Shown here in pieces: positions 1 to 61,066 of a stretch of 64,000 bases of DNA. The position numbers and the translations under genes are program-made. The notes below the pieces were generated by a model. The model was not told where the DNA came from and did not search any database. It saw only the letters and a list, made by a program, of their open reading frames with translations. Positions within the stretch are counted from its first letter, which is position 1. Each line of letters begins with the position of its first letter. The stretch spans positions 78,429-142,428 of the forward strand of contig ADNK01000490.1 in NCBI GenBank assembly GCA_000320545.1, in the 5' to 3' direction. Source of the stretch: Bigelowiella natans CCMP2755 (taxonomy: Eukaryota > Protista > Cercozoa).

Positions 1-740
1 CTTTTCTTGCTTTCATTGGCATTGCTTGATTTCATTGTTCAATTTGAGAAGATTTTTTGCATGCTTTTTGCAGTGGATGTGTTTGTTGTGACACTTCTTG
101 ATCACGTGTTTGTTGCAAAAGCAACAATGTGTTTTGTCGTGTTCATTTGCATTGTCGCAGTGACAATCCCTTGATCGAATGGGCATCAACATGATCTCTG
201 TTGTCCGTTCTGTGTTGAGCTACCCCCACCTACATCAGGAGCAGAAGGGACATTTTTTTGGGTCAAATCCACACGTCCACTGCGGCACAAACAAGCACAC
301 ATGCGCATTCGACCACACGTGCTTGAAGCGTGCCCGTGATGTGCAGATGCGATGGATCGACTGCATTTGCGCACATGGCACACGTCGATCTGGGTGCACA
401 TGGACGATTGTCACGTGCTCCACAGTTGTCTAGCTGTGCACAATTGAACAACAATGTCGTGTGACTTCGCAACACAAATCTAGAAATGACCAGTCTAGCA
501 GTGACGAATGGACATCACATCCGCGACAGCGCATGCTAGCATGTGCACATCATGCAGGCTGTGCCCAACTAGCCAACTGTAGCTCAGTCATCCGGCTAGC
601 CGGCCGCACCTGCTGCACAGCCAAGCTAGCAAACACTGCACAAGCGAACAAATGCCAATGCGTGCATGCAGCACTTTGATGTAATGACATGCTAGCATGC
701 GCAACATCGGCATTCAACATGTCATTGCTCCCCATCCAAG
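1..740. other. TpA-depleted intergenic island
   Basis: By-eye count of about 12 TA dinucleotides in 740 bp, about 11 of them in CTA/TAG context. Rich in TG/CA, with CpG retained. Confidence 0.85.
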
Positions 741-17370: not shown

Positions 17371-17649
17371 AGCAAACAATCCTATTACCATAAACAATTG
17401 CTTTTCCTCCCGGTATGATAGACCGGTGTCCGTAGCTACTGCTTTCTCTCTCAGCTACCACATTCTAGCATTGTGCACGTCGCCATGACCATATAGGCAC
17501 GCGGCATCATGTCGTTTGTAGCCATTCTTTTCTTGTGAATAACTTGCATCTAGTACGGCTCATGTATGCATGTGAAGTATTATCTACCACATGACATAGC
17601 TTGACGGTCAGATGTCATACCTACACCTCTAGAGCTATCATTTCCGCAC

Positions 17650-18590
17650 ATTCAAATGCCATTGATGTGCTGCACGTAGCACATCTACAAATGGGACATC
17701 AACCATCTGGACCATGCTAGCATGGACGCATGGACGCGCATTCACATCTCTAGATCTAGGTGTAGCTGCAGCGGCTAACAAATCTCTTTTTTGTTGCACG
17801 CGACACGTGCACCGCATGACGATCGATGCCGCGATTGTTCCATGTTGTTTGCGCGCGCAATTCCAGAATTGCTGATGTGGCAACATGTGCGTGGATGACC
17901 ATCTAGCCATGCACGAACTAGATGAAGACGCTTTGGACGAGCACATCTGCTCAGACACGCCACCAGCTAGACAGCTGTCCTCTCACGCTTGTCACGGTTG
18001 CCATGAGCCAGTCTAGCAGTGACCGGCCCTCTCTGGCCCTTGCTAGCTACGCTCACGCTGCGCACCAGCTAGCTAGCGGCTAGCCAGCTTGCAAGCTGGC
18101 TTGCTAGCTTGTTGTTAATTTCAGGCGAAGTTTTTCATTGGGTCAGCACTTGCGCAGACCATTCTGGCATTGCACAACGTGTTGATCGATGGAAGTGCAA
18201 CAACACACAAACAAGCAGATCTGCTGTCCAATCAAAGCTAGCAAAGGTGCATGCATGCACAACGTTGCTGCAGTCTGGCAATGCCCACTTGGACCAACAT
18301 TGGATCGTTCGATCCAAGTGAGATGCCACACCCAAAAATGTCTCAGAAGCGCAACTTCACATTGCAAACTTGTGAACAATGAACAATGACGAAAAACTAC
18401 ATCTCCGAAGTGTGACATGACAATTGCAGTGTGCGAAATGCAGTGCCTCGAACTGGCTTCAGTGAGGACTAAAACTGTGCCTCGAACTAACTTGTGACAA
18501 AGTGAATCACCTCACCATCTCGGCGAGTTGGATTTTGCCTGCGCACGAATGGACAACGACAAGGTCAGTTTCCAATTTCCATGGATTTCT
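17650..18590. other. TpA-depleted, CTAG-rich intergenic island
   Basis: Nearly all remaining TA lies in CTA/TAG context, with a dense GCTAGC run at 18040-18110. Confidence 0.8.
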
Positions 18591-18690
18591 GGTCAATAAT
18601 TTGAAGAGATAATATCTAAGGATGTGCTAGAAAGAAACAGAATTTGTTTTTTTGACAAAGAAACGCCCATTTTCAGTGAGTCCCCTCAGC

Positions 18691-19811: not shown

Positions 19812-19861
<50 letters not shown>

Positions 19862-19903
19862 CTGGGTGTAGAGAGAACCTTCCACATTATTTAAATATCA
19901 TAT

Positions 19904-19981
<78 letters not shown>

Positions 19982-20090
19982 CATATATTCATTATTTGTA
20001 ACATTTGCATTCGCAAATATCTTCGAATTAGGCGAGGTAGTGGAAGGATTATATGACGTGTATAAAGAAATGAGAGCTGAGAAACGGTGA
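18691..20090 (+). CDS. Hypothetical protein with signal peptide, multi-exon
   Basis: MGHVDGGTLLPWPGVVMALCLFLLVSPVQG leader, then exons IYLHNFPSALRSPLRGYLAFGDQ, VIGTGESMMDALKA, GIIVERSGPRLLPP..SLDQAA, EVVEGLYDVYKEMRAEKR*. Confidence 0.6.
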
Positions 20091-21677: not shown

Positions 21678-22069
21678 GCCCCTACTTATCCTCTAGGTTG
21701 CACTTCCTTCGAGGTTGAATATAGGAGCTATGTCAAGGAAGGTTCCCCTATCCACGCTCGCATCCAAAGGATGCAATTCAAAATTTCAAATGGCCACAAT
21801 TTGCGTGGTTGTAGGTGCGGAGTGCAGACCATTTTACTCATGCGACAACGAATCATTTTACATATCCATTGGAATCCACGAGCGCTGACGCAAGGCTGAA
21901 AAACAGGTTATTTTTGACGTGATCCTGGGTGAGAATTATTTTGTGAAATACCGAACATTATGACTTGACGGCAAGCAGGTTTCGTTGTCGCAATTATGAT
22001 GTAAAGAAAGAATATACAGATCCTAACCGAACATTCTCTCCTGCTTCCTCACAACCCAACAGAGTAGAT

Positions 22070-23406: not shown

Positions 23407-24389
23407 TTAGCGCTGCTAACATCCATCCCGGCATAAGATTTATTAATGAACGTAATCTTAGTACATATATCTGCCTTGCTCGAGGTTTGCAAACTCAGAC
23501 GTCTTATCACTTGCGGGAGCTTTCATAACATTCTGTGCAAAAACTTTGAAATCGATCCGATCGAGCAGATGCTACATCGTGTCGCCGCGAAAACTCAAAT
23601 TATGTGATAGATGTATACGATGGCTGCTTTGCAGCCATGCTAGCATGGCTCGTGCTGGTGCGTTCTTGCCTAGCTTGCACTGTTTTGACCGAATTGTCAT
23701 CCTAAGCGTTAATGAAAGCGTGTGTGTGTGCACATGCTAGCATGTGAAATGCAGATGTAACAAATGTACAAATTGCATGGAATCAACAGTCATCCCAATG
23801 TCTAGATGTAGCTGTGCAAAGCGGCGGCTGCAGAAGTCGGTGGCCATTAGTGCTCAGCTGACATGTTCCATGCTAGCATGTTTTGCCGAATGTAATGCCA
23901 TTGTTGTTGTTGTTTCGCCCGGCGCGTGACACACATACATGTATGCATGCGATGCATGCTAGCATGCTAGCATGCTATGGTCATGGCGCTTACTAGCTTA
24001 GCTAGCTAGTTACGATAAGTGGTCGAAATCTTAAACGTCGTCGCGCACATGGATGGATGCCTTTATTCTAACGGATGTTTGATGTGCATTCGATGATCCA
24101 GTATGCGTACATACAGTGAGCGAGTGACATAGCAGGTCGGAGCGTAGGGGCAATACATCTAAATGTCTGAAGCTAAGCAAGTAGCGAGCGTAACATATCT
24201 AGACATGGTGCAGTTTGGAAAATCTAGGTTTCGAGGGCGAAACAGAATGATGATATGTACGTTCTGATTGCGATACTACCGAGAAAACAGTATAAACAAT
24301 TAGGATACATCATACTATTTGATGTCTTACTGTACGCACTTCAGATTCTAAAAGCATTAAGTCCAATACCTGGCGATTCTAATAGTTTC

Positions 24390-25480: not shown

Positions 25481-25629
25481 GGACCTATTCCTTCCCCTCT
25501 TCCACTTGTCACGACTCGCACGTACGTACTTCGGTTGCTTGCAGGAGAAGAACCTGTGCTCTCTTTGGACAAAACACAGTTGAATTTTGACATGCGACAC
25601 GACCTCAGCTGCTGCAATTTTTATAGAAT

Positions 25630-26430
25630 TTTTGCCTGTGTGACGTGATGGGTGAGCACACTCATGATCCTTCAAGATCCCCTCATTGGAATCACTTCAT
25701 TCATTCATTCTTTCATTCAACCTGAATCGTTCGGCTGGCGGATGCGAAATTTGGTTGGTTGGCTTGTTCATTGCAAAGGAGGTGGAGCACGTTGAGCACC
25801 GAAAGAAAAAGAAGAAGAAAGAAAGAAAGAAACTTTGTAGTTCAACTGCGTTTCCAAAGTTTTGCATGAAAAAGAGTGAAACATTGAAACATCGAAACCT
25901 TGAAACGTTGATTGCAATGCGACACTCAACACGATGCACAGACAGCACGCTGCACTCCAGCACTCCCAGCGCGATGAAAGCACCTCGAACAATGGGTGAA
26001 CGAGTGAATTGTGAACGAACGACTTCACGCGTGTTTCCAGTGATCAATCGCACGCCACTGGCACCAACATTGATCGTCGCATCGCATCGTGCGTCACGGC
26101 TGCGCGCCGTCCACCATGCGCGTCTTGTCATTGTGCTTTGCTTGCATGGCTGGTTGGCATCGATTGCATCAATGTGGTCCTGCGCCAGCTAGATCGACTC
26201 TGTCGACTCGTGGCCACGACTGCAGACACGATGTGCACAGTGCACACATCGCATGTGATCATTGTGTACATGCAGTGTGGCACACATCTACTAGTCTAGT
26301 AGCTAGCTACGTGCAGTGCAACTGTGCAACACACATTGCTAATTGCCATATTGCGCACGTGAGATCGACCGATGTGATGTGATCAATGCAAGCTTTGCAA
26401 TTTGATCAATGGTCATAGATGGTCATGTCA
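25630..26430. other. TpA-depleted intergenic island
   Basis: Only one TA (GTAG at ~25838) between 25630 and 26188. Confidence 0.9.
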
Positions 26431-27165
26431 TCTTGATTGACTGATGACGTACAGTTGAACAGTGCACAATGTGCACCTTGTCGATCCATTGTCACGCAGC
26501 ATGCTAGCATGTATCGCATCATTGTGAGATGTGCAACCAGCTTGATAATCTTGGCTAGTGGAGCTGCAGCCACGTGCTCGCTCACGCAGGTGAACTAGCT
26601 TGCAATGTATGTGCTCCCAGCGAATTGACGTATGAACACGAAGCATGAGCGAGGTGTATAACAGTGCATGCATGATGGGTCAACACTGCGGGTCGTGGCA
26701 TAGCAGGGGACTTGCATTGTACTGCACTGGCCGTTGTACATTCACAGGTAATGTTACGTGTCGCGCGTGTGGCATGTGCAAAGTCATGGCATTCATGCAT
26801 GATCTTCGTTTGTTAAGCTAAGGATGAACTAACATAAAGAAATCATCTAGTAGCACAATAAGCATTAGGATACATTGTGTGAGATATTAATCAATTGCAA
26901 CTCGGCGTAGATCGTTGAGAGGTTTTTACTACAAAAAAACCGTCACGCCATATCTGCCGGCTATCGGTCATAAGCTAAGTGCACCAATCGACAACACTTA
27001 ATTATTGAGCGAAGGGAAGTGAAAGATTGTTTCTGCTTCTTACTGGTGATAATCTATGACGATTTTCACTTGTGGTGAAATATCGAATGTCACAAAAGAT
27101 TGAGATTTTGCAACGTAAATTAAGATTAAATAAAAAGCTGCAGCAAATAGAGCTAGCTTGGTGGA

Positions 27166-27783
27166 CTACCGTCTCTCGAAGTCGTACTCTCTTGATTTCT
27201 TATTTTGACTATAGTTATGCGGCGACGTTGATTCTAAATGACTCCACGACTCACTCTCGTTTTCTATGCTGGATCGAGACTTTCGTCGTATCAAAAACTT
27301 ATAGAATTTTGGTATTGGTAATTCAGATGACGCCCCCTCATCTTGAGGGGCTTCGTTTCTCTCACTTTCCGCTATGTTGACATTGAGAGTTTCTTCTCGT
27401 GATGGTACGGAACCCTTAGGAGATGATACTTTTCGATAGTGTTGATATTCCCTCAGTGTCTGGGACTTTTTCTGTAGTTGTCGCTGGAGCTTATGAATTT
27501 CAGTTGCGAGCTTGTTCTCCCGCAATACTTGCCGTCTAAAAAAATAGGGAAATGTGTTGTTTTAGCTAATCTGTTTTAACAGCTGTCTATACAAAAAACA
27601 TTTGTTTTCCAAGATGAACACGTTAAAATTAATGTGATACCGAACATGGGCTTCTAATTTTAGTTTTTTGTCTGAGTCTCTATCCGCCGGAAGAGTTGGC
27701 CGTTGCCATATGGTGAGGGCACAGCACGTCACGATAAGACCCACCACGAATAGAATTGCTGCGACAACACGAGAATTGAGCAT
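27166..27783 (-). CDS. Type II membrane-anchored coiled-coil hypothetical protein
   Basis: MLNSRVVAAILFVVGLIVTCCALTIWQ anchor, an intron, then LRENKLATEIHKLQRQLQKK... ORF ending at 27166. Confidence 0.5.
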
Positions 27784-28479
27784 CGCTATCAAGAATCTAT
27801 GACATTGGTTGGATAAGCTCGTACCAGTCAGCAGGTGCATGGCCATGCCTTGATGTCGAAGCCAGCTCACTATCCCAAAGGAGGATAGAGTACCTAGGAT
27901 TCGGCACCGACTGACTGCCCCTCTTTCTCAAACAATGCCTCGTTCTCTCTTTCGGTGCTGCTCCTAAGTACTCCTAAACAGCTCACGGGGGGGAATCCAT
28001 GGAGGACGACATAGACTCTACGATTGGCGGCGTTATTAGCAGTTACAACTCGTAGTTTACAATGTCAGTGACGGACAACAATAAATAACAGACCATTTCT
28101 TGCATTAATTTACTGTTTTTTAGTACCTGTGGATCCACGTGATTGTTGTCAGTGCAAATAGATCTAGATCTAGTTAAAAATACATCGTAGTTTCCCCCCT
28201 GAAATCTTTTAAAAATCACTCTTCAGAAATCATATCTAATGGATGATATCCGGATTACCAGAAATATTTCTTCACAAAAAATAAGGTATTTTCCGGAAGA
28301 ACATCTGGCCAAATAATACATGTACATTTAGTCTACGCTCATACCTGGACTACGAGCTCATTAAAATTTGAACCTTCTCGGCAATAACCTGGGTTTGGGT
28401 TCCGAACTTGTGGGATAAAATGAAGCGAACAGCGAACTGCCAACTGGTCCCAATTTTTCCCATGTTTCTACAACAAGGT

Positions 28480-31400
28480 CTGCAGATCTACGAGCTTAGA
28501 GAAGATGAATTGTAACTACTTATTCCGTCCATTCAAAAAAGTTGCATCCTCGCTTATTGCATAGAAATAAGATGAAAATTTTATGTGCGACAAAGGAATA
28601 GAGCTTAATTTGTTAGGAAACCCAGAGAAACCACAGACGAACAGTCAAACGGAATGGCGTCGATCACGTAGGAGGTTGGCCTAGAGTCGGTTTACATCGA
28701 TGTTGGGGATGGTTTTTTGAGTGTGGGAATCTAATAGTTAAGATAGAATTTCTGCTCTCCTATTCATACGCCATGAAGAAGGGGAGGATTGGATATCTTT
28801 TGTTGCAGCCGTAGTGGAGTCACGTGCTCATTCATAGTTTTCCAATTACTTATTTGGACCACAGACGCGTCTTGGGCTGACGCGTTGATTCCTGGCATAG
28901 AGATAACTGGCTTACGGAAGGAAGATTTCAATGCCATTCTTCTCCCCATCTTCCTCCATGGAGGGACCCCTACCGAGGGAAGGCGGGGAATTCCAATCGA
29001 ATGAGGACCTTTTGCCCTTAGCCCTTCAACATCGACCACCTCCTATCGGGCAATCTGAACTTGAAGGAAGTGATTCTGAATCAGACAGTGAAGCTCTTGA
29101 AAGGGGATGGGAAATAGAAAAGAATGACATTTTTCGAAGAAATGATAAGCCGTTGGGGGATGAGATGCTCGCGTTGATGTGTTCGGGAAGAATACAAGGA
29201 TGGGGTAACGCATCTTCCTTCTATCTTCTAAGTCGTATTTTCAATGATATTATCTACTTCTTTAAATATTGCGACACAGAGCCTGATGATGACGATTTCG
29301 CCGGTCATTTCCCCGGTGAAACGGAAGAGGATTTTGACGAACGTCAGGATATCAAAGCTTTCAAGCCTGTTTTGTGTGCCTATACAATTAAGGAAATGCT
29401 GCTGAAAGCTGGAGCGGTACCCTAGAAACGAGACGCTAGAACTGATACAATAAAACAATGAAGGCTTATCCAATTGACAAAATGAATTGTTGTTATATCT
29501 AGCCTCGAAAGAGAAGTGTGGGGAATACGACGGGGCGCAATGCATCCCCGGCATTTGGCTTCGGGAGATATAACTCAGCACACAACAACAACATTCAATC
29601 GAAATCCACCCCAGAGGACGAGGGTCTCTCTGAGGATCTGAAGGAAGCAGTGGAGCGGCTGCATTGCGTAGATCTTGATTTTAGAATACGAGGAAAAGAC
29701 CAGGTTGGAATATTTTTTTTTATGCGTGTTGTCGGTGGTTTTTAGTAGCTACAGCAGTGGACTTGTAGGGAACTTCTGAAATCTCTGATAAATAACTTGT
29801 TGCAGGCAATGCGTTTTGGAAACGTTGTTCCGACATCCATCTTTAGTTTTAAAAACATGAAAGCTTTCCCCAATGCCTCAAGTTCTCTCGCGGGCACTTA
29901 CTTTGGGTGGTCGTATTGGTTGAACTAGCTAAATTTCATCCTTCTAATAGACGTATTGTCTCACAAGCAACAACGCCGACACTTTTTTGATCTTCTCCCT
30001 GCTGCTTCCAGGTTCAAGATAAAGGGGGTATTCAAGAGCGACTCTGATGGGCGAAAGCATCTAGATATAAATTTTCTCTTTCCGAAGCCAACAAACCTCG
30101 ACGCCGCTGGTCTGCTATGTGCATTGTATAATGATAAAAAAAAAATGTTTCTCGTGGCAAACAAAAAGACAAAGTTGTCTCCAGTGAGTCTTTATCATTT
30201 AATTCGCATTCTGTCGCTTGTTGTCATCTTTTCTTTGCACGTATGGATCGATCGACCGTAAGAGAGAAGGGTTCTCCACCTAACCTTTCCTGGCATTTGC
30301 TAAATTTATGTGATCGGTTCCTGAAGTAGGTATGGTTTTCAGGTTTTACTAGAAAAGCCCTGCTAAGCGGACGACTTCCAGCCAGGGAGAGGACGCGCAG
30401 GAGACCACCCCCTCAGCAAGGGGGGGGCGCTAGCGCTACTACTACCGCGCAAAGGCGAAGATCTAAATCGAGGGCAAGATCAAAGTCGAGGAACCGAAAT
30501 GCAGACTTGAGAAAGAAGGTAGTCAGTAGCAGTTTCGAGGAGTGATAAAGTGATGTCATGATATTCCGAAATTGTCCTCGAAATGTGGAACGAACTCGCC
30601 GATGGTATTTATTTTCTTGGAAGTCGATCCTTGGCTATGTTGTAATGGCAGTATTAGTAGTAGGAAAGATGACATTTCGAACTAGAACCGTTATAGCGAA
30701 GAAGGCGATGGTGAAAAGCATACTTCAACTTCCTACCAATCTGCCGTTAGTGACACATTTGTAAAACTGCGGAGGAGGAAGGGAGGAGCCCTTTCCTCCT
30801 CCGCCATCGTTTCGTTGAAGTTTGATTGATTTACAAGCCTTATTACGTGCTGCTTCTCCCATAGGTTGCTGCTGTTGATTCCGTCGATCTAGCTAAGAAG
30901 GGAGAATCACAAATGCGGTATTAGCAAACTACTTAGAGAGAGAGGAGAAGAAGAAGAAGAAGAATAAGAAGTGTCAGAGCATTGATGTCACAACGATGAT
31001 GGGGCTGATAATGTTGATGATGATGTACTCTTTGTACCCTCTCCCTCGTAATCTCTTCTCATTTGCCTTACTACTACCGCAACAACTACCTCAACAACAA
31101 CAACGACGACGACGACGACAACAAAATGGATAGAAATCGGAAAGCAAGATTTGAAATTCTAAAATAATTTGTCCCGATTGTTCGACTTAAAATACTCTTT
31201 CCCCTTGAACCAGGGAATGGCTTGAGCGAAAGAATGCCAGGAAGATGAAAAGGTCTTATTATCCCTACGATCATTTCTCTGTACTACTACCGCAACGCAT
31301 TGTTTGCAATCTCCTACGTACATTAAGACCTTGGTGATGTTTTCTTTCCTGCGACACGGCATTGTAAGACAGAAGTCAGCCGTCTTTGCAGTACCGTTTT

Positions 31401-33190
31401 AGAAGACGTCGTAAATATCTTTGTTCTGAATGTTTTGAAGCCGAAATTCAACTAGTATCTTGCTCGTCTTAACGCTTCTCGTTCGTACGAATTATTTGTG
31501 CTACTGCAAAGATGGGGACGACCTTCGGCCTACAAGACGTTACCGGCACACGAAGTATCTCAAGATCAAGTAAGCAGTACTAGTTGTTGTGTTGTTGTTC
31601 AACAACTTGGCCATGCTATGGATAGATGGACTGCTTTTTTTGGTTTTGATAAATAATACATCTACAGTCTCTTTTATCCCTCGTTTCCTCTTTTCCTCCT
31701 CCTCCTCCTCCTCCTCCTCCTCCTTCTCATGGTATGATTTGAGTGACATCACCCACCATCGTGTACTGCTGCTACGTAGGATACTCAAATAGAAGCTGAC
31801 CGGTTGATAACGAGAATCGTGAAGAATCAAAACACCACTAGAGGCACGCCCAGAGGAGGTAAGAAAATCATTGCTCATCATCGCAAACCATGTCAAATGC
31901 GTGCAGCACATACCTTTCACGAATTGATAATGCGAACACATTGGATCTTTTCCGGTGGCAAAAAATATGTATATCTTATGTAGAGACTGCCATCGGTCCT
32001 ACCTGCATATGCAATACATTGATTCAATCCGAAAGGAGGGGATTTGTTTTACTCTGTTTCATTTTCAAAATTAAAAAATTTCTGTAAGCATGCATGGCGT
32101 GCATTTTCTCATCATCCCGAAGAACTAACTCTAATCGTTTAATATTGGTCTCGCGTTCGTCGTTGTGACCACCATCACAATCGCAGCGACTGGTAGGGGC
32201 TATACTCATAACTACCTCAACTACGTCAATGCACAGCAGCAGCAGCAGCAGCAGCAAAAACAACTCTCAGATAGCCGAGCTGGGGGAGCAGACAAAAAGC
32301 CGAAGCGAACCCTCGGCAAATCCCCGAGAAGAGACCAAAATCATCAAAACCAAAATGCTGCTGGCAAAAATAGAAGCAGCCATCACCAAGCTACCACTTC
32401 AACAACAACTACACCTACTACTACAACCACTACTACTAGTACTACTACTGCTAAAAGTGGTGACCAACAGCAGCAGCATCCACGTCCCCCCAAGGAGAAA
32501 AGGAAGAATCGATTCACAACGGGGGCACGGGTAAGATCAGGTAGTATGGTCAGAGGCCAGAGGAGAAAGCATAGAAGCAATACCAGCAGTAGCAATCGGT
32601 CAAGCAGTAGCAACGGTAGTAGTAACGGTGGTGGTGGTGGTAGCGGTCGTAGTAGTAGCAGGAGAGCTGCTGACACGCAAGGCGATGTTTACTACAAAGC
32701 TATAATACCAAGAGCCATATCGATGGGCGTTGGGCACAACGAAAATAGCAGCTACAACAACAGCAATTGCCTTGCAGGGGGGGAGGGTGGCCCTGCCGCT
32801 GCCGCTGCTAGGGGATGCAATGTGGAGGCCAAGGGAAGAAGCTCTACCCCCCCTTACAACCACCCTTTCCACCTGAAAACGGATAGTACTGCAACTAATA
32901 GTGACACGAATGGCATTACCACGGAGGCAGCAGCAGCAGCAGCAGCATCAGAAATGCCTAAAAGTGGGAGGGTCGCTAGCTTGAATTTCAATTCGATCCC
33001 CAAATGGGACAACTACAATTTTGTGGCTGGAGGAGGAGGAAGTGCTTCTCAGAAGCATCTTCACGAGCAAAATACGCCTTCTAGTGGTGGGAGGGTCAAA
33101 CAAAAATATCAGCAACACCAACAACATCGCTCTGCCACTCTTGCCGCCGCTCGAAAGCCATACACCCGCCTCAAAGGTTTGATGTGGAAG

Positions 33191-33231
<41 letters not shown>

Positions 33232-33800
33232 TGTAGAGAGAGAGAGAGAAAGAGGAAGAGAGAGATTGATTGATCCACAGCTTCGTTATCCTTCCTTTCA
33301 ATATCGTGGCCAGATCAACCCGCAGGAGGCAAATCAGCCGCCACAGCAACAGCAACTGCCACAGGGTATTGCAGTGTATTGTATTGTACTGAATAGCCAT
33401 TATTAGGCTACTCAGTTTGATGATGATGATGATGACGATGATGGACGATGACTGCCACAAAGAAACAATATCGAGATAGATGCGAGACGACAGCATGTCT
33501 TTGCTTTTGCTTACATATCTGTTTGTGCTAGTACTTGTACTCCACGGGGCAGGCCATCATCGTTATCGTCATCATCCTCCGAGATGTACGCTTACGCCTC
33601 AAAAGGGGGGGGACCACCATCTGGGCGGAAGCATCAGCAGCAACAGGCTCCTATAAATCACCACTACAACCATCGACAATATCTCCATCATCATCATTCT
33701 CCCGTATGTAACCTAACTTGTTTAATTTTCTCAAAGGGATCATGAGCACACACATATCTTTGTTTCTCACCTTGAATATGTGTCTCCTCTCCGTCATTGA

Positions 33801-33843
<43 letters not shown>

Positions 33844-33951
33844 CTCTCTCTCTCCTCTTCTTCTCTATTCTGTACGCCTCTCACCCGATAGATGAAGACG
33901 AAATACCAGCAGCATTCGGGCAAGTTTCCATCGCTCACAGGAGGCCACTCG

Positions 33952-33982
<31 letters not shown>

Positions 33983-34497
33983 CCTGCTACTGCTGCTCCT
34001 GCTGCTACCACTACTACTGCCAGTATTAGAAGCATCATCACAACTTGTTCGCAGTTATTCACTTACCAGGGACTAAATATTCTTCATCATTATTTTAAGC
34101 AGCGCTAAATCCTCCATCGCCCATGTCTTGATCGGAAGGCAGCTTACCTCCGCGGTCTCGCTAGTAGTAATTAGTAGTTACTTCATGTGGAAATCTAAAA
34201 AAACAACCTCATCATCGGTTTACGAAGCTACATATTTTTGCCTAAAAATACAGAGAAAGGGTGCGCTCATTCGTCGCAAGAAGTGATGATTAACGTATTC
34301 TTCCTCATCCTCCTCCCATTGCTCAGGTGGATCGGATGGGACAATCGTCTATGGGGCTATCATCAAAGAAGCTTGCATCGAGGTTGTGCCTCCTGCTGCT
34401 CCTGCTGCTGCTACTAATGCCATTTGTTAGTTGATTAGGGACCGTTTGATTGATGTACTTCATTAAGTTCCCTTCGTTTCCTCATACCAATTTACCA

Positions 34498-34900: not shown

Positions 34901-35544
34901 TTAGAGACAAGACTTGACTTGATGCGCCACGAACTCGCCTGTCTCTGTTTACATAACAATGTATAAACCTGCAACCAAGTTCTCAATGAATTTGTTATAG
35001 TTCGCACATATGATATGCTTTACGTATGCTAGCATGGTGGTAAACCCAACTTACTCAAAGTCTTTAGCAATATGATACACGCATACTAGCATAATGCTAT
35101 GTCATTCTCGCAGGGAAATCTGCCTGGTTGCTTTGTTATGTTGGTTGAATTCCATTCGCTTGCATGGGCGATGGTTGCGCAAAACGTACCGCTAGGCGTA
35201 TAGCAACAGAATCTATTGCAATATCTAATTATAATGTGGATCGGATGTGCAACGCATGACCTAACTAAGCGAGGCGTTGCTTGCCAGCCCCTAGCCAGCC
35301 ACCATGCACGTAGCACAGCAACTTAAACTTAGTTTGGATCGTCCCGCGCGTGAATGACACGATGCGCGCATTTACACATACATGTGATGCATATCCATAA
35401 CTAGATAATGCAATCAGTCGCATTATTGATTAAATACTGCTCCGCATTGATTAAATCTACGCAATGCCACGCACACGCGTGTTTAGTCCACGTCGCTGTC
35501 GTCAGATTTTAAAAATTATCGTGAATGCTAACGCAGCCCAAATT

Positions 35545-40929: not shown

Positions 40930-41940
40930 AGAATCGAAACAATTCCAGATTTTCGTTCTGCGACACTGGATTGATTCCTCCTTCTCTCACCTCCTCGTTG
41001 CCGACGTGTGTTTGACGGAATCACTTCTTGCTGCGTCCTCGCAGCCATGCGCGTCAATTTTGCCCATGCTGGTTTTCACACCAGAGAGTCCTCATTGTTT
41101 TCAGCTCGAGGCACTACATTTCGCACTTTGCTAGTGTCATGCAATGGTTGGAAATGTGGTCGATCAACAAAGTTTCTTTCTTTCACGATCGACAGAGCTT
41201 CCACATCGACCTTTTGTCAAGTCCCCACGTCCGGTCTACGTTGAGTGCATGGCTGCTCCGCTTTCCCAGCTGCTTGAGGCGCGACCACTTTGTCAGAAGT
41301 GCGTTTGTGCACGTCTTGTTGGAGTGTCGAAGTGAACACGAATTGACGACCTTGAACCTTTCAGCCTTGGATCTTGACTTTGACACTTTGGCACGTTGCA
41401 CCGCGCTGGGCCATTTGGAATCACTTCACTCATTCATTGATTTACCTGTTCATGGTTGCCGCTTCTTCTCCTTCTTCTTCTTCTTCTTCTTCTTCTTCTT
41501 CTTCTGCTTCTTCATCATCTTCTTGATTGCAAAGCGCAAGGTGGAACTTGGTGCACTACTTTTTGTGGTTCTGTGAACGCAACAAACTGCAACATTCGAA
41601 CCACTTGATTCGCGCACTCATCAATGGGATTCATCAGTCTCCAATCATTTGTTGTGTGAGTGATCGAATGGGTGATTTCCAACAGGATGCAGCACACACA
41701 CATGCACAGTGCAGGCGAGCAGCAGGGGAATCATCAAACCCCAACGGGCTAGCGGGTGTGAGATGTGAGACCAAGTTGCCTGGGAGGGGACCGTTCACGT
41801 CTGAGTCGCCACAGCAACATCTAGAACATAACCATGCACAGGCAGGAAACAAACTTGCGGCACTCCATCTCTCTTGTCAATGCTTTTGAACATGCACGCA
41901 CGATCTGGATCATGCTAGCATGCATGGCTGGCTCGGATGA
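40930..41940. other. TpA-depleted intergenic island
   Basis: About 9 TA in 1 kb, about 7 of them in CTA context. Confidence 0.9.
40940..41440 (+). mobile_element. Degenerate repeat, possibly a non-LTR retrotransposon 3' end
   Basis: Encodes a HVLLEC motif resembling a LINE C-terminal zinc knuckle and ends in TTGGAATCACTTCA(C/T)TCATTCATT, which is shared 23/24 with 25686-25709. Confidence 0.35.
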
Positions 41941-44442: not shown

Positions 44443-45204
44443 TAACGTGAATTCTCGCGTTCAAGGTGTTCTGATCTGTGAAATCTCTGATGAGTACAAT
44501 TGATCTGTGATGAGAATCACGTGCAGCAACTACGTCCGAACTCTGCTATTTCATGTCGTAAGCGTGAAATATTCCATATCGTATCTATGAAACATATCCC
44601 ATTTGCAAAATAGCGAGGAGGGTAGTTCCACGCCAGCCTCTTGCACACGTTGCGAAACCCAATGGATGGTTCACCAGTACGAAACGATTCATCCCCACCC
44701 AACCAAATCTCTCAGTATCTTCATCCTTGGTCGATAGGAAGGATGCAAAGAAGAAGAAAACTACCCCAATCTGCTTGCAGTGTGTCGGATATCTGTCCGC
44801 CTGACAACACAAAACACAAGAAGAGTAAGATTTTATTTTGATGCATGTATCTTTGTGATGTATCATGTTGTGATGGGGGGAAAATGAAATACTTCAACTC
44901 CATGAAGGCTTCACATGAACGCTAACATAAAGATATTGAACATGCCAGGATATCTTGTATCCACGGAGACTGGTACACCCTCTGTATCTCTGAAAGTCAA
45001 TTTAACGTCCAATGAACTAGCTTCGTGCGATAGTCCTCACAGTAGGCTAAGAAAAAGGAGGAGGATGTACGAAAAATCTGCAACAAATCTTGATTGGCTA
45101 ATCTGTAATATCTCTCCCCTTAAATGCCCTCAGAAACGCCACCATAAAACACGAGCGTGTTGATATAGGAACTTCTCAGAGGCAGAGACAGAAGATACAC
45201 GCAG

Positions 45205-46476
45205 ATGAGAGGGGGTAAATTCACAATGGTAGCACTCAATCAAAACTTTTTCACCGATTTATGTAACCTTTTACGCAGAAACGAAGAGCAGAAAAGGGAA
45301 ATGCTTGCGCAATTTAGTGAGATGAGCTCGCATTACAATAGAAGGCATCACTCAACCTATGTCCGCCAGGATTCTGTTTTTCCATTGCAACTTTCTGCGC
45401 CATATCTTGCTCCTCGAATGCGAATGCCTATAGTTTATCCACTGCGTCACATACCCTATTTTGGTATGCATACACTTGGAGAAGTACACGTTGATCATCC
45501 AGCTCTCCCCCCTCAAAATTTTTATTTCATTTCCCCACATCAACAATCATACGTTTCGATACCACCAGTTCTCCTTAAAACTCACCCAAATCCTGCGACT
45601 TGGTCGCAAGAAAGAAGCCTACCCCAAGATTTTCAGATTAAGCATGCTCCAAATCATTACTGCTCCTCAAGCAGTCACGAAATTTATCCGCCACCCCATA
45701 TCCCCCACTCTATCCATGCTCGTGTCGCCCACACCCCAGCCACGGCCCCACCCACCTCTTACCTTCCCACCTCTTCAGTATCAAGGCAATATTCGGAAGG
45801 AAGAGAGAAACAGGCCTCAATGGCAAATTCTGGCAGTAGTAATGGCGGCCATAGCCAATATTCTCATCTGTCGTTACCAGATGGCGAAGGGAATGTTGTC
45901 GGTCCGAAAAATTTCGCTGTGAAGACTATTCCCCCTGTTACTATGCCTTCGCAAACAGTCAAGAATTTACCGAACGTACTGCTTGGAATGTGTGACAGAT
46001 TCACCGAAAAAAAGGGGGGTTACGCCGACGTAGCGGAGGATTCACAGGGTGGACTTTTCATCGTAAATCATCATTCGAAGGAAGTGCAATCAATCCGTCC
46101 ACAAGCAGAAGAAACTCCATCATCTTCCGGTCGTAGTGCAAACAGCTTTGGAGTGCCTGATCAAATTCGAACAGTTCAAATTTTCAATAAGCATTCCGGT
46201 AAAATGCACAATGAACCTTCCTAATAATCTGGCATCCATTGTTACTGACAAGCGATCACTCGCATATGTTCTGTGAAAGGTCGTTACAACTTGCGGTATG
46301 TTTGTTCGGTATGTGGATCTATGAAAGCTGGCAAATGTCACATTCTGTCGCATCTGCGATCTCACACAGGAGAGCAACCATTCAAATGCACGATTTGCAG
46401 TCGAAGGTTTGCGCACAAATCGAATTGTGTTAGGCACCTCTTGCATATGCATGGTGTGAAAATCCCATCATGTTAG
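45205..46476 (+). CDS. C2H2 zinc-finger transcription factor (two fingers) with long P/S/H-rich N-terminus
   Basis: An intron at 46199-46279 joins ORF 45205 in frame to YVCSVCGSMKAGKCHILSHLRSHTGEQPFKCTICSRRFAHKSNCVRHLLHMH. Confidence 0.85.
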
Positions 46477-46669
46477 ACAAGTAGCAGAGCTTGTCTGGAC
46501 TAAATGAAATTGATAGACTTGACAAAGAAGTGTGAAAATTCATTTTAGAAAATCTCTGGTTTACAAAATAATGATAGAATTTAGACATGACGATGAAAAC
46601 TTAAACATTGTTTCTTTTCTTGATCCTTCGTCGCACCTAAACACCAAGGTCTTAAAACCTTAACTTACA

Positions 46670-47330
46670 CCAACTTTGAACATGTGGAAAGAAGCTAAAT
46701 GTGCTTGCCATCATTTCTTCATGAAAACTATCGTGTGGTCTACAACGATGCAATTGCACATCGTGTGGTGCGATCAAAGATTGAAAAATCATGTGGAATC
46801 TTTGCAGTGAAAAAATGCAGAAAAATAGATGATGCTGCTATGCCACTTTGACTGACATGATGTTTGAGTTCGATGATCATGGCTAGATGGGCATCTCAAT
46901 GTGCGGGCTTAGGAACAACTATCTAACTAGACAACCGTCTGTGCGTTGTCTCTGCTAGTCCTGCTAGCCTGTGCGTTCTAGCGTTGCCCACATTTAACAG
47001 CGCCGCGCTAGCTAGCGCGCATGGCATGCATGTGCAACTAGCTAGGTTGTAGTAGGGCCAAAAACTAAACTAAGTTTTGCTCACAACCATCTCCATGCGC
47101 CATCTGCTGTAGCTAGTAGCTAACTAGCTAATGCATGTCCACTGCTAAATCCATGCTGCACGTCTAGCTGTCTAGCTGTGTTAGCCATGCTATGCTAGCA
47201 TGCTAGCATGTCCGTGGCAACTAGTCTAGCTAGCTAGTAGTGTTCAGCTAGCTAGTTCCACATCTAAGCATGCACACAACAAAGCTAGAAAGTGACGCAA
47301 ATTGACAACATGCGTGCTTCTGCAGGTCGG
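46670..47330. other. TpA-poor, CTAG-rich tract between convergent genes
   Basis: For example CTAGTCTAGCTAGCTAGTAG (47221) and ATGCTAGCATGCTAGCATG (47192). Non-CTA/TAG TpA is rare. Confidence 0.8.
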
Positions 47331-47612
47331 CATTAGTAGCTTTGTACGAGAACGCCATGCACAGCACGTGCAGCAGTGTTTCTTAATCTAGTAATCTTAG
47401 CAAGTACCATGTAAATTGCAACATGAATCACGGACACAATCATGTCTTGTCTATACCTAGATCTTTTCTAGATTCAACGCAACGGAGATGAAGGGACACA
47501 GCACATATGAATACACACACACCAATGATGGGAATAACCAACAAGTCATTGTCAAAAACAACTAACTACTAATTGAGAAAATCTAAAATGTCATTTTCGG
47601 CACCACTAGATC

Positions 47613-49496
47613 CTAAAAATATAACAGCATATAGGTTTCTGAATTTGGAAAGAATCGATATGGCTTCTCGTGCAATCCATTTTTCATATTGTTTGTGTTA
47701 CCTGGAGCAACTCCAGAGTTCTGCCCCATTGTTCCCACGACTTTGTTGAACCCGCTATTTCCTGTCTCGAGGAAATCCAGGACATCACCACCTCCTCCAT
47801 TCCCTCCCATACTCCCTGGAGCTTTCAAGAACCAATCAAAGAAACAAACAAAACCAGTTGTTATGTTGATAACAAAACCAATTGTTTTGTTGATTGTAGC
47901 TGAGAATTCGTATATCAGTAATCAGCTAGTTTCTTATGAAGTAATTGGTGGAGGGGTGTGAAGAGGGGAGAGGGGGGCGGACCATTCCACGCCTCAAAAT
48001 GGGTACATATATTCTGCTGTTGATTTGTCAGGTGATACGCAGTATTCATATGTTATCGCATTTCGAGCTGCTATCATTTTTTAACTTCAATCTCCTACCA
48101 GTTCTAGTTCCCGCTGCAAACCCGCCGAGGAAATCATCCATCCCGCCTAAAGAAGGAAAGATGTGGAGAAAAAGAAAGGAAAATAATCATGACTCGCGAA
48201 AAAAATACATGAAGAAGTTCAATGGTTCATACACAAAATTTGGACACTGAAATGTACGCTTGCCTCTCAAATAGTGTACGACAAACTAATTTAAGTTTTT
48301 CCGTCTTTCAGCAGGTTGCAAACAAATCATCCATCATTGAACTTCCACCTGAACTTCCTGCTCCGATCATTCCTCCCATCAAGTTGCTACTATTGGTGGT
48401 GCCGCCCATGAAGCCAACGCTGGTGCCGCGAGATACACTTCCCGAGCTTCCTCTCTTCGTCATCTTTGAAATCACACTTGCTTCCCCTCCTCCTCCTTCT
48501 CCTCCTGCACCTCCGGATCTTACCATCTTGTTGCTAGAGCTATGCTTGTTCATTGCTGCGTTGTTGCTATTTCTACTTCTGTCGTTGCCACCACCGAACC
48601 CAAAATCCCCGAAAGGATCATCCAGGGCGCTGGCGCTGCTGCTGCCTCCTCTCGAGGATGAATGCTTACTGCTGCTGCTGTTTCCTCCCATTCCATTCCT
48701 TTGATGATGAAGAGGGTTGCTGCTGTTACCGTTGTTCTTGGTGCTACCCGTGCTACCACTCATTAGATCGCCAAATATATCATCCGCGTTGCTAATGTTC
48801 GTAGTAGGTCCTCCTCCTCCTCCCGAGAGGAAATTGAATGCATCGGATGTGCCATCGTTACTCGCTGATTCATGCGTAGAGATAACCATGACAATAATGT
48901 TGTTACTGTGTTGTTGGTGATAATGATGAATGAATACATGCAGCAGCACAGAGATTCTTATTCAGTTCCAGGCAAGAAAGTAAAAGATTTCACTGTCGTG
49001 CAGCCTCGTATACATCATTCTACACACGCTCGCCGTCGTTAGCAGCATCATTGGCCATAATGATAATCATCATCATCAATATCATCATCATCAATATCAT
49101 CATCATCAATATCATCATCATCATCATCATCATCCTCATCCTCATCGCCTTCGCTTCTCTTTTTATCATTAGGCATTGTAACAACCCCTACCCTGTGTGG
49201 TCGTAGTCGTACTGCTCTGCTGGTTCTGGCTGGTCTGAGAGATATAGTAGGGGGCAAGGGGAGGACAAAAGTATGTGGAGACGTGTCTTGATGTTATTAT
49301 TTAAATTTTGGAAATTAGAAAACACAACAAAGATTATTTGATAACTGAACAAGGCAATATCTCAAAGTATAATCTGTAACATACATGCACGACTTGACTA
49401 CTTCCTCCCACTTTATCATTCTGCATTCTAACTCGCTTCAACTACCACGCGAGCAGGCAGTTTTGTCTGTCGTCCTGTCCTTGTGGATGATGGTAG

Positions 49497-49527
<31 letters not shown>

Positions 49528-50264
49528 ACTGCTGCACCCATCATTGTTTTCCCCCCGCTCCTACTGCTGCTGCTGCTGTTCCCGCCACCGAAGAAACCCA
49601 TGTCGAATGGATCTCTTCCTCCTCCTCCTCCTCCTCCAGCTACTTCTGCTGAAACTACATCACCTCCCGGTGTTGGTTTGGTCGCATACTCCTTGGCAAG
49701 TAGATCCGAGAAGGTTCCTGACACAACAATAACATAGAAGGGTCAGCAGATAGTACGAAAGAAGAATTCAACCGTCGCTCGTCTTTAATGATGATGACTA
49801 ACTTATAGTCAGCTCATGTTGCTAGAAGCAGAAAGAGACAGCTGCAGCAGCAGCAGCAGCAGCAGAAAAAGAAGAAGAAGAAGAAAACACTGATGATAAT
49901 GATAATGATGATGATGACGATGATAATGATAGTGCAGAATTTGCTAATTTCAAAATAAAGTTCGATACGAAACGACATTCGTTTGTCATTGCTTCTTGTT
50001 GGTTGCCAACCTCAAATTCCACTCCATTCCCTCCGCCCCCGCCCCCTTCCACCCTAGGTCAACTCCATTACCAACATCGCCAGAATCATCAAGCGCTGCA
50101 GTTAGGCCCGAAGCGTCTACTTCCTGAAAAAGAGCATCATCATTCACATCTCCCTCCATTGTTGTTGGTGTGGTGTCGCCATCGTCATTGTTGCCGTCAT
50201 TCATCGTCGTGATTGTCGTGTCCGTGTCATTATTCATCATCATGGAGAGTATACTGTTCAAGAT

Positions 50265-50298
<34 letters not shown>

Positions 50299-51033
50299 TG
50301 ATCCTGCCGAAGCCCTGTCTGACAGCTGTGCGAGTCTCAGCCTCCCAACACTAGAAAGCATGGTCTAGAGCAATAGCGCATAATAATGAGAGAATAAAGA
50401 TATTGAAGACAATGACATTCACGATGTCAGCACCCACACCACCACAACCTGTGTTATTTCCAAAAGATTCGCAACATCAGCCTTGGAGAGACACGACTCC
50501 ATCAGCAGCGGCGTGACCTAAAAGGCAGTGTGGCGGATGATGATGCAATAGGTGCGATAATAGGCTGTGATGAAGTAGAAGAGTTCTCCTTAACAATACA
50601 ACCGTATGTGATACAAAAGATCATGCAACGTGCGTTAATGTGTGCATGCGTGATGTGTGTTTCTCTCTCCCTCTCTCTCTCTCTCTCTCCCTCGTACGTG
50701 TGTGATGGGTGCAAACAGGCGAAAATCGCGAATCGAGGAAATATAAGTGAAGAAAATGGTGGCAGGGGACTTTTAGCTCTTTGGTATTAATGGTGTGCAA
50801 TTCTTTCTTCCCCAGCCCTTGGCCCCCCTCCCTCCAAATTACTTTTTCCCTAGTAACCATCTATCCTTTCTTCTTCTACTACAACTACTACTACTACAAC
50901 TACTACACTTGTATTAGCAACCATTGGTAAAAGGGTTGTAGCTGTGATGTTCGCTCCCATTGCCTTGCCAAGAGACGAATACAATCGTATAGCCGCCCGT
51001 AGTAATATCGCAGACTAACACACCATCAACGTA

Positions 51034-51074
<41 letters not shown>

Positions 51075-52165
51075 CATATATATATATATATTTTTCACAT
51101 ATATAATACCATGGTGAAAGATGCTTATGATTCAATTGCAAGAAGCAGTGTTACAAGTCCTCTCCTTGCATCAATCAGTCTTCCATCATCGTTGCTATTT
51201 ATCATTATCATCATCATCATCGTTCTTCTGATGATGCAGGGTTCCCACGCACGACTGTCATAATCACGCTACTACTACTACCGACCCTGCCGAATTTAAT
51301 TGCATCATTGACAGCAGGAATGATAAGCTCCTTCACCGTGACTTTATCAAATAACTCGAACAGGTTTCCGATGGCATTCAGTGCACCTTGTTGTTCAAAT
51401 GAGGAATAGCACATCATCATAGTAGTTCTCACCATACTCACCCACCCTCCCTCCACATATTTTCAGCATCGTCATCATCATTCCACCGTGATTAATCTAT
51501 GTTTCCTTCAGGGATGCGCTGCTCATCAATCAAGATCGGGGTTGCTTCTATCAATCTTCAATGTTTGACATCATTGTTTGTGGTTGCTTCTATCAATCTT
51601 CAATGTTTGACATCATTGTTTGTTGTTGATAATTTGCACACCCACCTGCTCGCACCTCAGCAGGACCTGGCCCCTTGGCGAGTCTTTGGATCTTCGGTAA
51701 TATGCTTTTTTGTTGAAGACGGAGAAGACACAAGGGATGGTGAGGTGGCAATGACGACGATGATGATGATGATGATGATGATAAGGAACGACATCAATGA
51801 TGCAAATGCTGCTGCTGCTGATGATGATGATGAAAGTCTGGTGGTGGAGGAAGGAAAAAAACACGTAGAAACAAACTCGCCCCCCCCCCCCCCCCCACAT
51901 CTACACAAGAGCAAGCAAAAGGAAGAAAGAGAGAGAGAGACTAAAGACACTGAGATACAAACGTACATATATTGTGATTTGTGCATACAAATATCTGTGG
52001 CCATGTCCGCTTGCACAAACACACACACACACACACATACAGTTACATAAAAATGATGATATGATTTGTACCGCTGCTGCTGCATTGGTTGCATACATAC
52101 ATGCGAGGAGGAATTTGTGTAAAGCTTGGATCAGTTATTAATGACTTGGGTGAAAGAAAAAAGGG

Positions 52166-59248: not shown

Positions 59249-61066
59249 CAGTTGATTAATAAATACTGCTGCTGCTGCTCTGTGTTCTATGGTGAGAGAA
59301 GTAATTCCTGCGTATTTTAAGCATACCATATTATTTTCATTTGAAGCAATATTCCACTTGGTGACAAAAGCGTATGAATAGAGTTAGTTCTTAGCTCGTA
59401 TTACAAAATGGAGACCATTGTCTTCGAAACACCCCAGTACAGCTTCCTTCTTGTGCCAATCAAGTTTGTCTCTTGCGGCATTTTTTGAAAGGAGAGAATA
59501 AGTTCGGCTTGTCATGGTTGAAATGAATTTGCACTTGCAACTCTTGCAACTCTTACATCTATTCCCCCCTCCCCCATCAAATGCATTCACAATCAATCAT
59601 TCAAAAATAACGATGCACGCTGTACATATTCCTAATATTCTACCAACAAAATACCAGTAGTCCTTATTCCAAGATATCACTCCTGTGGTGATTTATACAG
59701 TCTTCGTTTATACAGAGATCATTATTTAAATGATTAAACCATATTATCGGTACGCGTGCTATTCTGTGCGCGTGCAAGAATGCTACTTTTAATACCGACT
59801 TCGTAGACCTCAACTCTACAACAACAAACTAAACATCACCTTGTAGCAGGTCGAACAAAATTAGCGAAACCTTGCTCTTGCAATGGTGCCTTGAAAGCCA
59901 TAAGATCATAGCGTGCAATATACCTCAATAATGATGAGAGAAATGTTTGCCTTTGTTCAACTACTCATTGTTATTCTTTACCGATGCAGTAGATAAACTC
60001 GTGCAATCCAACATAATTAAATTCAATAAAATTTTAATCCAATGGTAGATACGTACTATGCACGCATCTGGCCGACCTGTAATGCTCTGCTCTGGCTAGC
60101 TGGTGAGCTGCGCAGCTAGCTATATGATACAAGCTTAGAGGGGGAATGCGCGACGCGCCCGTTGCAGAAAGCAAAATAGAGAAAGGCGGGCGTTTCATCA
60201 TCGCTCACATCTGGATGTACATGCTAATAATCGTATCAAGCCTACTACATGTCACATCGAATGTAGCTCTAGAGCTAGATGGAGTGAATCTGCCATAGCT
60301 AGCATAGCTAGATAGTTATGTCTAGAGTTCAACCGCACATGCGTACTACGACTTGGCGACCTTGCTAGCTGGTAAACGCTACGGACCGCCCGGCTAATGT
60401 GTCCACCACCATCTTACGAGCAACACCAGCAGTGCTAGTGTGTGGATGAATAGCCAGAGGAATGCTAGCATGCTAGCATATTTGCATGTTATGCAGAATA
60501 ATCTCGTAATATCAAGAGTCTCACGAGTCAAGAGCACGCAGCATTATGATGAATTGACTGCGTTGCATGTGACGTACAGCTGCAATGCATGAACACGTAC
60601 AAGGAACAATCTACTAATGCTGGGATATATCACTATGTATATGGCATTGTACGCTAGGCGCTATTTCCGATCTATGTCTATGATCACCATATTTTCACAT
60701 GAAACAAACCCCAAGAACAAGGCGAAAGGAACAAGCTTGGTAAGGCACACACATACTTCACGGGGCGAGAATTGTTTGCGCTCACTAAAATTTAAATAGG
60801 TTCAAATTTTCCCCATTCATGAAAATGTGACTTACAATTTATAGTTGTATATTAGTAAACGCATTACACATATCTCATACACGAATTTTATCGTGTTCTT
60901 TTCGTCCTTACAGATATAAAGAAGGTAAGTAGCAGTTGTAACATTGTTCACATTAAGGACAAGGAAAACAAAAATGAATACTATTGTATACGTAATATTG
61001 AATGAGACTTCCTAAGATAATTGGTTGGAACGGGCACAGACATCATATTAGGCAGTCACAGCTTCT

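Follow-up and report, generated by a model that had tools for sequence, protein, structure and literature searches.

Clustered CTAG scars in the Bigelowiella natans genome: probable footprints of repeated insertion and excision with 4-bp target duplication

We studied a window of 64,000 nucleotides (contig C3247:78429-142428) from the 91.4-Mb assembly of Bigelowiella natans, which comprises 3,736 contigs. Our focus was a tract rich in CTAG and CATG at window positions 46880-47330, which is enclosed by two convergent genes, here called gene A and gene B. Many of the CTAG sites in this focal tract and in similar tracts belong to a stereotyped insertion scar of the form N4-CTAG-N4, where N4 is an exact 4-base direct repeat on both flanks. 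We consider it probable that the scars are footprints of repeated insertion and excision. The sampled DNA amounts to 222 kb and consists of the window, the remainder of contig C3247 and 80 kb from contig C908; scar counts refer to this sample unless the window is named. The window itself has a G+C content of 44.5% and an observed-to-expected ratio (o/e) of 0.76 for TpA, and its microsatellites are numerous.

The focal tract and its flanking genes

The coordinates of the genes and scars are collected in Table 1. Four RNA runs were mapped over window positions 44800-50700. For gene A, whose introns are of the GT..AG type in the RNA contigs, the open reading frame (ORF) shares 99% identity with an MMETSP transcript protein, and tblastn places the coding exons at 44915-46473. 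The RNA reads bear out the position given by the initial annotation: the tract occupies the ∼500 bp that separate two convergent poly(A) sites, where RNA polymerase II (Pol II) must terminate. At 46967-47163 the RNA depth was zero in all four runs. The 3'-biased plus-strand reads of run X22 dropped from 14.6 to 2.2 in the bin 46770-46966, the minus-strand reads begin in the bin 47361-47557 and an oligo-T loose end was found just before 47379. Both mapped poly(A) sites (n = 2) fall outside the focal tract and the outermost focal scars (46879 and 47384) touch the transcript ends of genes A and B. For the scar at 47384..47395 RNA contigs from three runs are identical to the window sequence. The RNA of the focal spacer folds somewhat better than shuffled versions of it (z = -2.7 on each strand), which the palindromic scars alone would bring about.

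Two further observations concern the RNA contigs. A contig of run X17 shows 7 extra bases (AATGCTG) after 46202, the donor site of the last intron of gene A. Contigs of run X2 match the window from 46871 or 47192 on and carry unrelated sequence before; most likely they were joined to other CTAG-rich loci.

Structure of the scars

Across the 222 kb, 82 of the 619 CTAG sites (13%) have the form N4-CTAG-N4, compared to a chance level of 1/256 for identical 4-mers flanking any core. All three parts of the sample contribute: the window with 41 scars among 203 CTAG sites, the rest of contig C3247 with 15 among 192 and the 80 kb of C908 with 26 among 224. Perfect flanks were found at 0-1.6% of the sites of other 4-letter palindromes, and only the cores of dinucleotide microsatellites reach rates as high as CTAG. 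The similarity of the flanks is limited to exactly 4 positions. When we compared repeat lengths of 3-6 combined with insert lengths of 0-12, only the combination 4 + CTAG + 4 stood out. Inserts of the type CT..AG with 5-40 nt showed no enrichment except at 12 nt, where the small excess consists of nested scars. Such nested forms include CTAG-CTAG-CTAG, CATG-CTAG-CATG-CTAG-CATG, N4-CTAGCTAGCTAG-N4 and (CATGCTAG)n.

As the flanking repeat is confined to 4 bases and only the CTAG insert is enriched, the unit of change is a gain of 8 bp, namely CTAG plus a second copy of the 4-bp target. The polarity of this change can be seen in a palindrome of ∼850 bp on C908: one arm contains ACCT-CTAG-ACCT, the other arm ACCC alone. 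Two properties of a cut-and-paste excision footprint are thus directly observed, the duplicated target around 82 of 619 CTAG sites and the additional 8 bp in one of the two palindrome arms.

Target preference

The duplicated target varies widely, with 50 different N4 among the 82 scars, and is still governed by a symmetric rule. It begins with C in 53 scars, with A in 20, with T in 9 and never with G; it ends with G in 46, with T in 24, with A in 11 and with C in a single scar. Within the scar zones, by which we mean the 17 clusters described below, C..G targets were used 7.1 times more often than their availability suggests. The 4-mers starting with G or ending with C make up 42% of those available in the zones and account for none of the 70 zone scars. 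CATG is the N4 of 18 of the 82 scars, and in 28 of the 82 the N4 is palindromic. This is the pattern that a two-fold symmetric enzyme with a 4-bp staggered cut would leave. The rule places a G before the insert and a C after it, which explains the excess of GCTAGC that had been noticed from the sequence alone. Simple 4-bp tandem duplications such as CTAGCTAG and CATGCATG are also elevated, and so are many other tetranucleotide repeats.

Clustering and genomic scale

Over the whole window CTAG is less frequent than expected, with 203 occurrences compared to 244 expected ones. At the same scale GCTAGC reached 3.65 times, GCATGC 3.2 times and CTAGCTAG 8.6 times its expected count, and all three motifs are sharply clustered. 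The densest example is the 500-bp bin at 47001 with 20 CTAG (mean per bin: ∼1.6). The tracts are therefore real: the ten that had been named cover 3,690 bp (5.8% of the window) and contain 84 of the 203 CTAG sites (41%) and 35 of the 41 window scars. This corresponds to 22.8 CTAG per kb compared to 2.0 per kb elsewhere in the window (binomial P ∼3e-49). Each of the eight main tracts has at least 2 perfect scars if those just beyond its limits are included. In the full sample 70 of the 82 scars fall into 17 clusters of 140-940 bp, which make up 3-5% of the 222 kb, and the remaining 12 are isolated.

Other compartments are nearly devoid of scars. As proposed initially, the gaps taken to be divergent are largely free of CTAG: 6 CTAG and a single scar were counted in the four of them (3.7 kb in total). 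The eleven introns with RNA support (1.88 kb) have 4 CTAG and no scar, and there is no scar in 48 kb of the best-scoring ORFs. The tracts are also, as had been stated, not copies of one repeat. In the 91.4-Mb genome the focal spacer matches only itself, apart from one match of 35 nt, and a self-BLAST of the 222 kb returned no family common to the tracts.

The claim that the tracts lie downstream of stop codons, usually between convergent genes, stands in part. The RNA reads show it for the focal tract, and strands assigned by Pfam support it for 60090-60480 (SAP on the plus and calpain on the minus strand) and, on the left side only, for 23630-24010 (SIR2, plus strand). The tract at 41.75-42.2 kb lies upstream of a minus-strand Pyr_redox_2 gene and hence probably in a head-to-tail junction, at the 3' side of its right-hand neighbour. 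Strand calls are difficult in this DNA. A self-trained codon model was too noisy, the splice signals of the 11 introns are too loose for scanning and base skew, which we examined as a strand indicator of genes, is weak. A Pfam search of 20 ORFs flanking the tracts gave one match.

To obtain the genomic scale we counted CATGCTAGCATG in the assembly and found 3,828 occurrences compared to 7 for the reversed-letter control. For a 20-mer of 2.5 units and its control the counts are 147 and 0. As CATG represents 22% of the sampled targets, the CATGCTAGCATG count suggests ∼17,000 perfect scars genome-wide, and a straight extrapolation from the 222-kb sample leads to 34,000. The scar density is ∼0.25 per kb in dead transposon copies compared to ∼6 per kb in the zones. 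Our literature search returned no paper that describes N4-CTAG-N4 scars.

Table 1. Genes, scars and scar clusters in the window.
Feature	Position	Strand	Remarks
Gene A, C2H2 zinc-finger protein	44915..46476	+	last coding base 46473; transcript contigs end at 46749, 46830 and 46845
Gene B	47379..50518	-	seven CT..AC introns; poly(A) site ∼47379; one contig extends to 47345
Spacer between convergent poly(A) ends	46870..47379		from RNA reads of four runs
Focal CTAG/CATG tract	46880..47330		22 CTAG in 451 bp; TpA o/e 1.34 overall, 0.59 outside CTAG; unique in genome
Scar ATGG-CTAG-ATGG	46879..46890		
Scar CCTG-CTAG-CCTG	46960..46971		
Scar CGTT-CTAG-CGTT	46974..46985		
Scar CTAA-CTAG-CTAA	47120..47131		
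Scar CTGT-CTAG-CTGT	47168..47179		
Scar CATG-CTAG-CATG	47199..47210		within short (CATGCTAG)n run
Nested scar CTAG-CTAG-CTAG	47226..47237		target itself a CTAG
Scar AAAG-CTAG-AAAG	47281..47292		
Scar TAAT-CTAG-TAAT	47384..47395		in last 17 nt of the 3' untranslated region of gene B
Cluster, 6 perfect scars	476..699		
Cluster, 6 perfect scars	17461..18111		
Cluster, 7 perfect scars	23636..24000		downstream of SIR2-domain ORF (+)
Cluster, 2 perfect scars	26287..26511		adjoins TpA-erased island 25626-26189
Weak cluster, 2 perfect scars	35082..35408		
Cluster, 2 perfect scars	41745..41922		adjoins TpA-erased island 40930-41740; upstream of Pyr_redox_2 gene (-)
Cluster, 3 perfect scars	60092..60315		between SAP-domain ORF (+) and calpain ORF (-)

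Apart from the scars we noted three other repeat features. Contig C908 begins at a chromosome end, with (CCCTAA)n telomere-type repeats at the contig start (locus L009:30-161), and carries a tandem array of 2.7 kb at C908:34054-36748 (period ∼179 bp, copies 82-87% alike). In the window a 42-bp unit is repeated 2.1 times with 97% identity at 51540-51628, within a plus-strand ORF at 51499-52050.

TpA erosion

The initial annotation had linked the tracts to islands from which TpA has been erased, and we found the same association. Outside CTAG, six of the eight tracts are poor in TpA (o/e 0.13-0.59 compared to 0.72 for the window) and rich in TG and CA (TG+CA o/e 1.4-2.0 compared to 1.19). Two sharply bounded islands lie directly beside scar clusters: 25626-26189 with a TpA o/e of 0.03 and 40930-41740 with a TpA o/e of 0.10. 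A preprint on B. natans reports that silent viral DNA is hypermutated from A:T to G:C at TpA and that 124 TpA-poor clusters are spread across the genome (bioRxiv 10.64898/2026.01.13.699255). It concerns the same genome: a 30-base reference allele that it lists for scaffold_11 has an exact match in our assembly. Erosion of this kind would turn TA-rich DNA into CATG and TGCA, as TATA can become either of them. The CATG that it yields explains the excess of GCATGC and at the same time supplies the preferred target of the insertions.

In the same annotation CTAG was regarded as the context that is protected from erosion. This is contradicted by the scars, in which the TpA of CTAG itself is eroded. 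The commonest single-change variants with perfect flanks are N4-CTGG-N4 and N4-CCAG-N4, and 10 of the 28 such variants lie in the zones, where 1.4 would be expected. Furthermore, two Harbinger-like copies with 95% identity carry CACG-CTAG-CACG in one case and CACG-CCAG-CACG in the other. Scars with one mismatch in the flanks amount to ∼20 above background compared to 82 perfect ones. Given this low proportion the scars are young on average, with a decay of ∼3%.

The hypermutation from TpA to CpA or TpG acts in the same species and explains the TpA-poor, CATG/TGCA-rich background as well as the eroded scars. However, this process yields substitutions and is unable to generate an insertion of 8 bp, and CTAG is absent from the text of the preprint (bioRxiv 10.64898/2026.01.13.699255).

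Proposed mechanism

The reading that we favour as the probable one is that the tracts, untranscribed DNA beyond poly(A) sites, are footprints of repeated insertion and excision by a putative element or enzyme with 4-bp staggered cuts, laid down on a background of TpA erosion. The target would be opened with a 4-bp stagger and a segment with CTAG (or CT...AG) ends would be joined in, so that N4 is duplicated. On its later departure the segment would leave CTAG as a self-complementary 4-nt end on both flanks, and these ends could pair and be ligated without processing; such re-ligation would explain why the footprint is uniform. The variant in which each end retains two bases (CT + AG) agrees less well with the data, since the joining of non-complementary ends should give mixed products and none were seen. 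The enzyme would prefer symmetric C-W-W-G targets, with CATG as the best one. Every scar would add new targets, a CTAG and a second copy of N4, and zones that have been struck would thereby draw further insertions. Meanwhile erosion would turn an AT-rich spacer into DNA rich in CATG and TGCA and would slowly convert the scars to N4-CTGG-N4 and N4-CCAG-N4. The most plausible agent would be a cut-and-paste mobile element with CTAG ends.

The accumulation beyond poly(A) sites could be due to selection, to targeting of termination zones or to both. With selection a bulky transient insertion would be tolerated only beyond the poly(A) sites, which is consistent with the lack of scars in ORFs, introns and promoter gaps. 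With targeting or self-reinforcement the zones would be maintained by the CATG that comes from erosion, by the CTAG and N4 copies that come from earlier scars and by re-insertion nearby. A bolder version, which we regard as doubtful, is that Pol II termination zones are the target of a still active system, be it an element of very low copy number whose ends are CTAG-cohesive or a domesticated enzyme. The footprints of this system would then build and lengthen the spacers and provide self-reinforcing landing pads for other mobile DNA.

The search for a parent element

Several results weigh against the insertion and excision reading, in particular the outcome of the search for the element. In the 222 kb and ∼60 kb of repeat loci we found no element with terminal inverted repeats (TIRs) that has CTAG or CT..AG ends and a 4-bp duplication. 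The scans for TIRs and for CTAG-ended inverted repeats (the scan for TIRs with 4-bp duplications covered the window only) returned just pairs of scars and one local palindrome. Genome-wide there is no Pfam match for the transposases of piggyBac, DDE_3, mariner, MULE, CACTA and IS4/IS5. The transposon families that are present (Harbinger, hAT, pogo-like and a TIR family of ∼370 bp) have other ends. Footprints repaired by end joining are usually heterogeneous, and the strictly uniform scars do not resemble such products. The density in dead transposon copies hints that neutrality alone may be insufficient to produce the clustering, provided that these copies, presumably neutral, are of comparable age. 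Finally, none of the 21 de novo indels in mutation-accumulation lines is a gain of N4 + CTAG (bioRxiv 10.64898/2026.01.13.699255), although with ∼1 expected this count is uninformative. The expectation is based on a scar formation rate roughly estimated at 2-4 x 10^-4 per genome and generation, derived from 17,000-34,000 perfect scars, a decay of ∼3% and mu = 3.5e-10, and on ∼3,300 line-generations of mutation accumulation, as estimated from Table S3.

We considered each of the families in the genome as a possible parent. The Harbinger-like elements (15 matches) are TpA-erased and have other ends. The hAT-like elements (3 matches) are TpA-eroded, and on both sides of the C2036 copy stands the direct repeat TTCCAGAC(T), a duplication of 8-9 bp as is usual for hAT. 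The 38 matches to rve integrases consist of elements of the long terminal repeat (LTR) type and a family of ORFs of 373-379 aa, whose element ends in AGAGT... Two near-identical pogo-like copies were dismissed because of their ends. Several copies of the ∼370-bp TIR family sit inside the CTAG zones, yet all 6 copies examined end in ...CTGCTGC. This family has at least 40 copies with 83-97% identity and forms inverted pairs whose members lie on one contig at distances of 3.4, 5-7 and 19-21 kb (e.g. C908:57250-57637 and loci L035-L039). The ORFs beside it (459 and 419 aa) are 21% alike and have weak Pfam matches only, including the RHSP P-loop. Possibly these are the virophage- or transpoviron-like elements that have been reported for B. 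natans.

Some properties of these families are worth recording in their own right. The pogo-like pair (C2661:200580-204035 and C2845:4546-8001) is 99.4% identical and carries an intact ORF of 594 aa with a pogo-type DDE_1 domain. Its homology starts at AAGTGTGCGAC... in both copies, and the C2661 copy has a perfect hairpin of 59 nt near L045:3200-3258. The copies with DDE domains are nearly free of TpA, with an o/e of 0.01-0.35 (Harbinger-like loci L017-L022; hAT-like loci L031-L033 and L040-L044), which is consistent with the TpA hypermutation of foreign DNA (bioRxiv 10.64898/2026.01.13.699255). The LTR-type and integrase loci L023-L030 retain an o/e of 0.8-1.1 and have intact ORFs of up to 1,646 aa in ∼20 copies. 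A separate pattern appears in the mutation-accumulation lines, where eight of the ∼14 de novo insertions end in ACA: +GACA, +CAACA, +ACA, +ACACA, +TGTTTGTAACA, +TACGCGCAACA, +CATTACA and similar (bioRxiv 10.64898/2026.01.13.699255). One multinucleotide change in these lines, TGGC>AACA, looks together with the ACA-ending insertions like another recurring insertion signature.

Comparison with known systems

Several systems share single features with the scars. In Tc1/mariner-type excision footprints a short palindromic remnant stands between the two retained copies of the target duplication, and they likewise record an insertion followed by an excision. Here a variable 4-bp sequence is duplicated instead of TA, CTAG is invariably the remnant, the genome has no match to a Tc1/mariner transposase domain and there are thousands of scars without an element. 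A stagger of 4 nt with self-complementary overhangs, as in piggyBac excision, would explain the uniform product. However, piggyBac restores TTAA and leaves no scar, and its domain PF13843 has no match in the B. natans genome. Elements of the IS5/PIF-Harbinger type are known for short duplications at YTAR- or TWA-like targets; they resemble the scars in the short staggered cut and in the preferred symmetric W-rich target, which is similar to CWWG. The Harbinger-like copies of B. natans, in contrast, end in ...AACAATGCCC, have a TpA o/e of 0.01-0.08 and show no association with CTAG ends. The 4-bp duplications that depend on topoisomerase II have the same stagger, and topological stress gathers at convergent gene ends. 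They consist of N4N4 with nothing between, which leaves the constant CTAG unexplained. Base J, which lies at the termination regions of kinetoplastids, likewise marks the zone where convergent transcription ends, but it is a chemical mark on T whereas the feature seen in B. natans is inserted sequence.

Alternative explanations

An agent without any mobile element would be a host or domesticated nuclease or transposase that writes the 8-bp mark at Pol II termination zones, for example at breaks caused by convergent transcription. Such an enzyme would account for the strictly uniform product, for the missing parent in spite of ∼17,000-34,000 extrapolated scars, for the tight confinement of the focal tract between two poly(A) sites and for the low scar density of dead transposons, ∼25 times below that of the zones. 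We nevertheless judge it unlikely. No repair route is known to add a constant CTAG to filled-in 4-nt overhangs, the 12 isolated scars lie outside the zones, and a few low-copy elements hopping over ∼1e8 generations would be enough to give the scar numbers.

The initial annotation took the tracts for a cis-signal or for the mutational footprint of a base modification. Neither reading is supported by the observation that the CTAG sites are stereotyped 8-bp insertions with a 4-bp target duplication, present in one palindrome arm and missing in its partner. That the tracts are a selected signal for termination, insulation or chromatin state is quite improbable in our view, although they are positioned exactly in the termination zone and the spacer RNA folds better than its shuffled versions on both strands. 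The folding is what the palindromic scars would give in any case, both poly(A) sites lie outside the tract, the focal spacer is unique in the genome and insertions with arbitrary N4 suffice to explain the motif content. A secondary use or later co-option of the tracts may still occur. We give even less credence to a footprint of base modification or TpA erosion in which CTAG is the sole surviving context. Most tracts are indeed TpA-poor outside CTAG and rich in TG and CA, and TpA-directed hypermutation exists in B. natans (bioRxiv 10.64898/2026.01.13.699255). However, survival cannot give rise to either the 4-bp duplication that flanks CTAG or the gain of 8 bp relative to a paralog, and the TpA of CTAG is eroded in the scars as well. 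This explanation is contradicted for CTAG and valid for the CATG/TGCA background. Replication slippage that expanded a microsatellite of the 8-mer CATGCTAG can hardly be the cause. Short (CATGCTAG)n runs do exist (e.g. 23945-23977 with period 8) and 2.5 units were found at 147 places genome-wide, but 78% of the scars have an N4 other than CATG and most scars are single 1.5-unit events in unique sequence. The diversity of N4 already contradicts slippage.

Implications

Whichever agent is responsible, the scars record in datable form that DNA was broken and rejoined at gene ends, and they account for an excess of CTAG and GCTAGC that could otherwise be mistaken for a regulatory code. With 17,000-34,000 near-identical copies by extrapolation they appear as a visible part of the DNA between gene ends in a compact algal genome. 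If the agent is mobile, it would unite features in a combination new to the literature: CTAG ends, targets of the type CWWG, a 4-bp duplication of variable sequence and a footprint that is perfectly uniform. If it is not mobile, the scars would represent a new mutational process tied to transcription termination. An active system at termination zones, if it proves to exist, would amount to a new insertion chemistry, in which a variable 4-bp duplication is followed by seamless re-ligation at CTAG.

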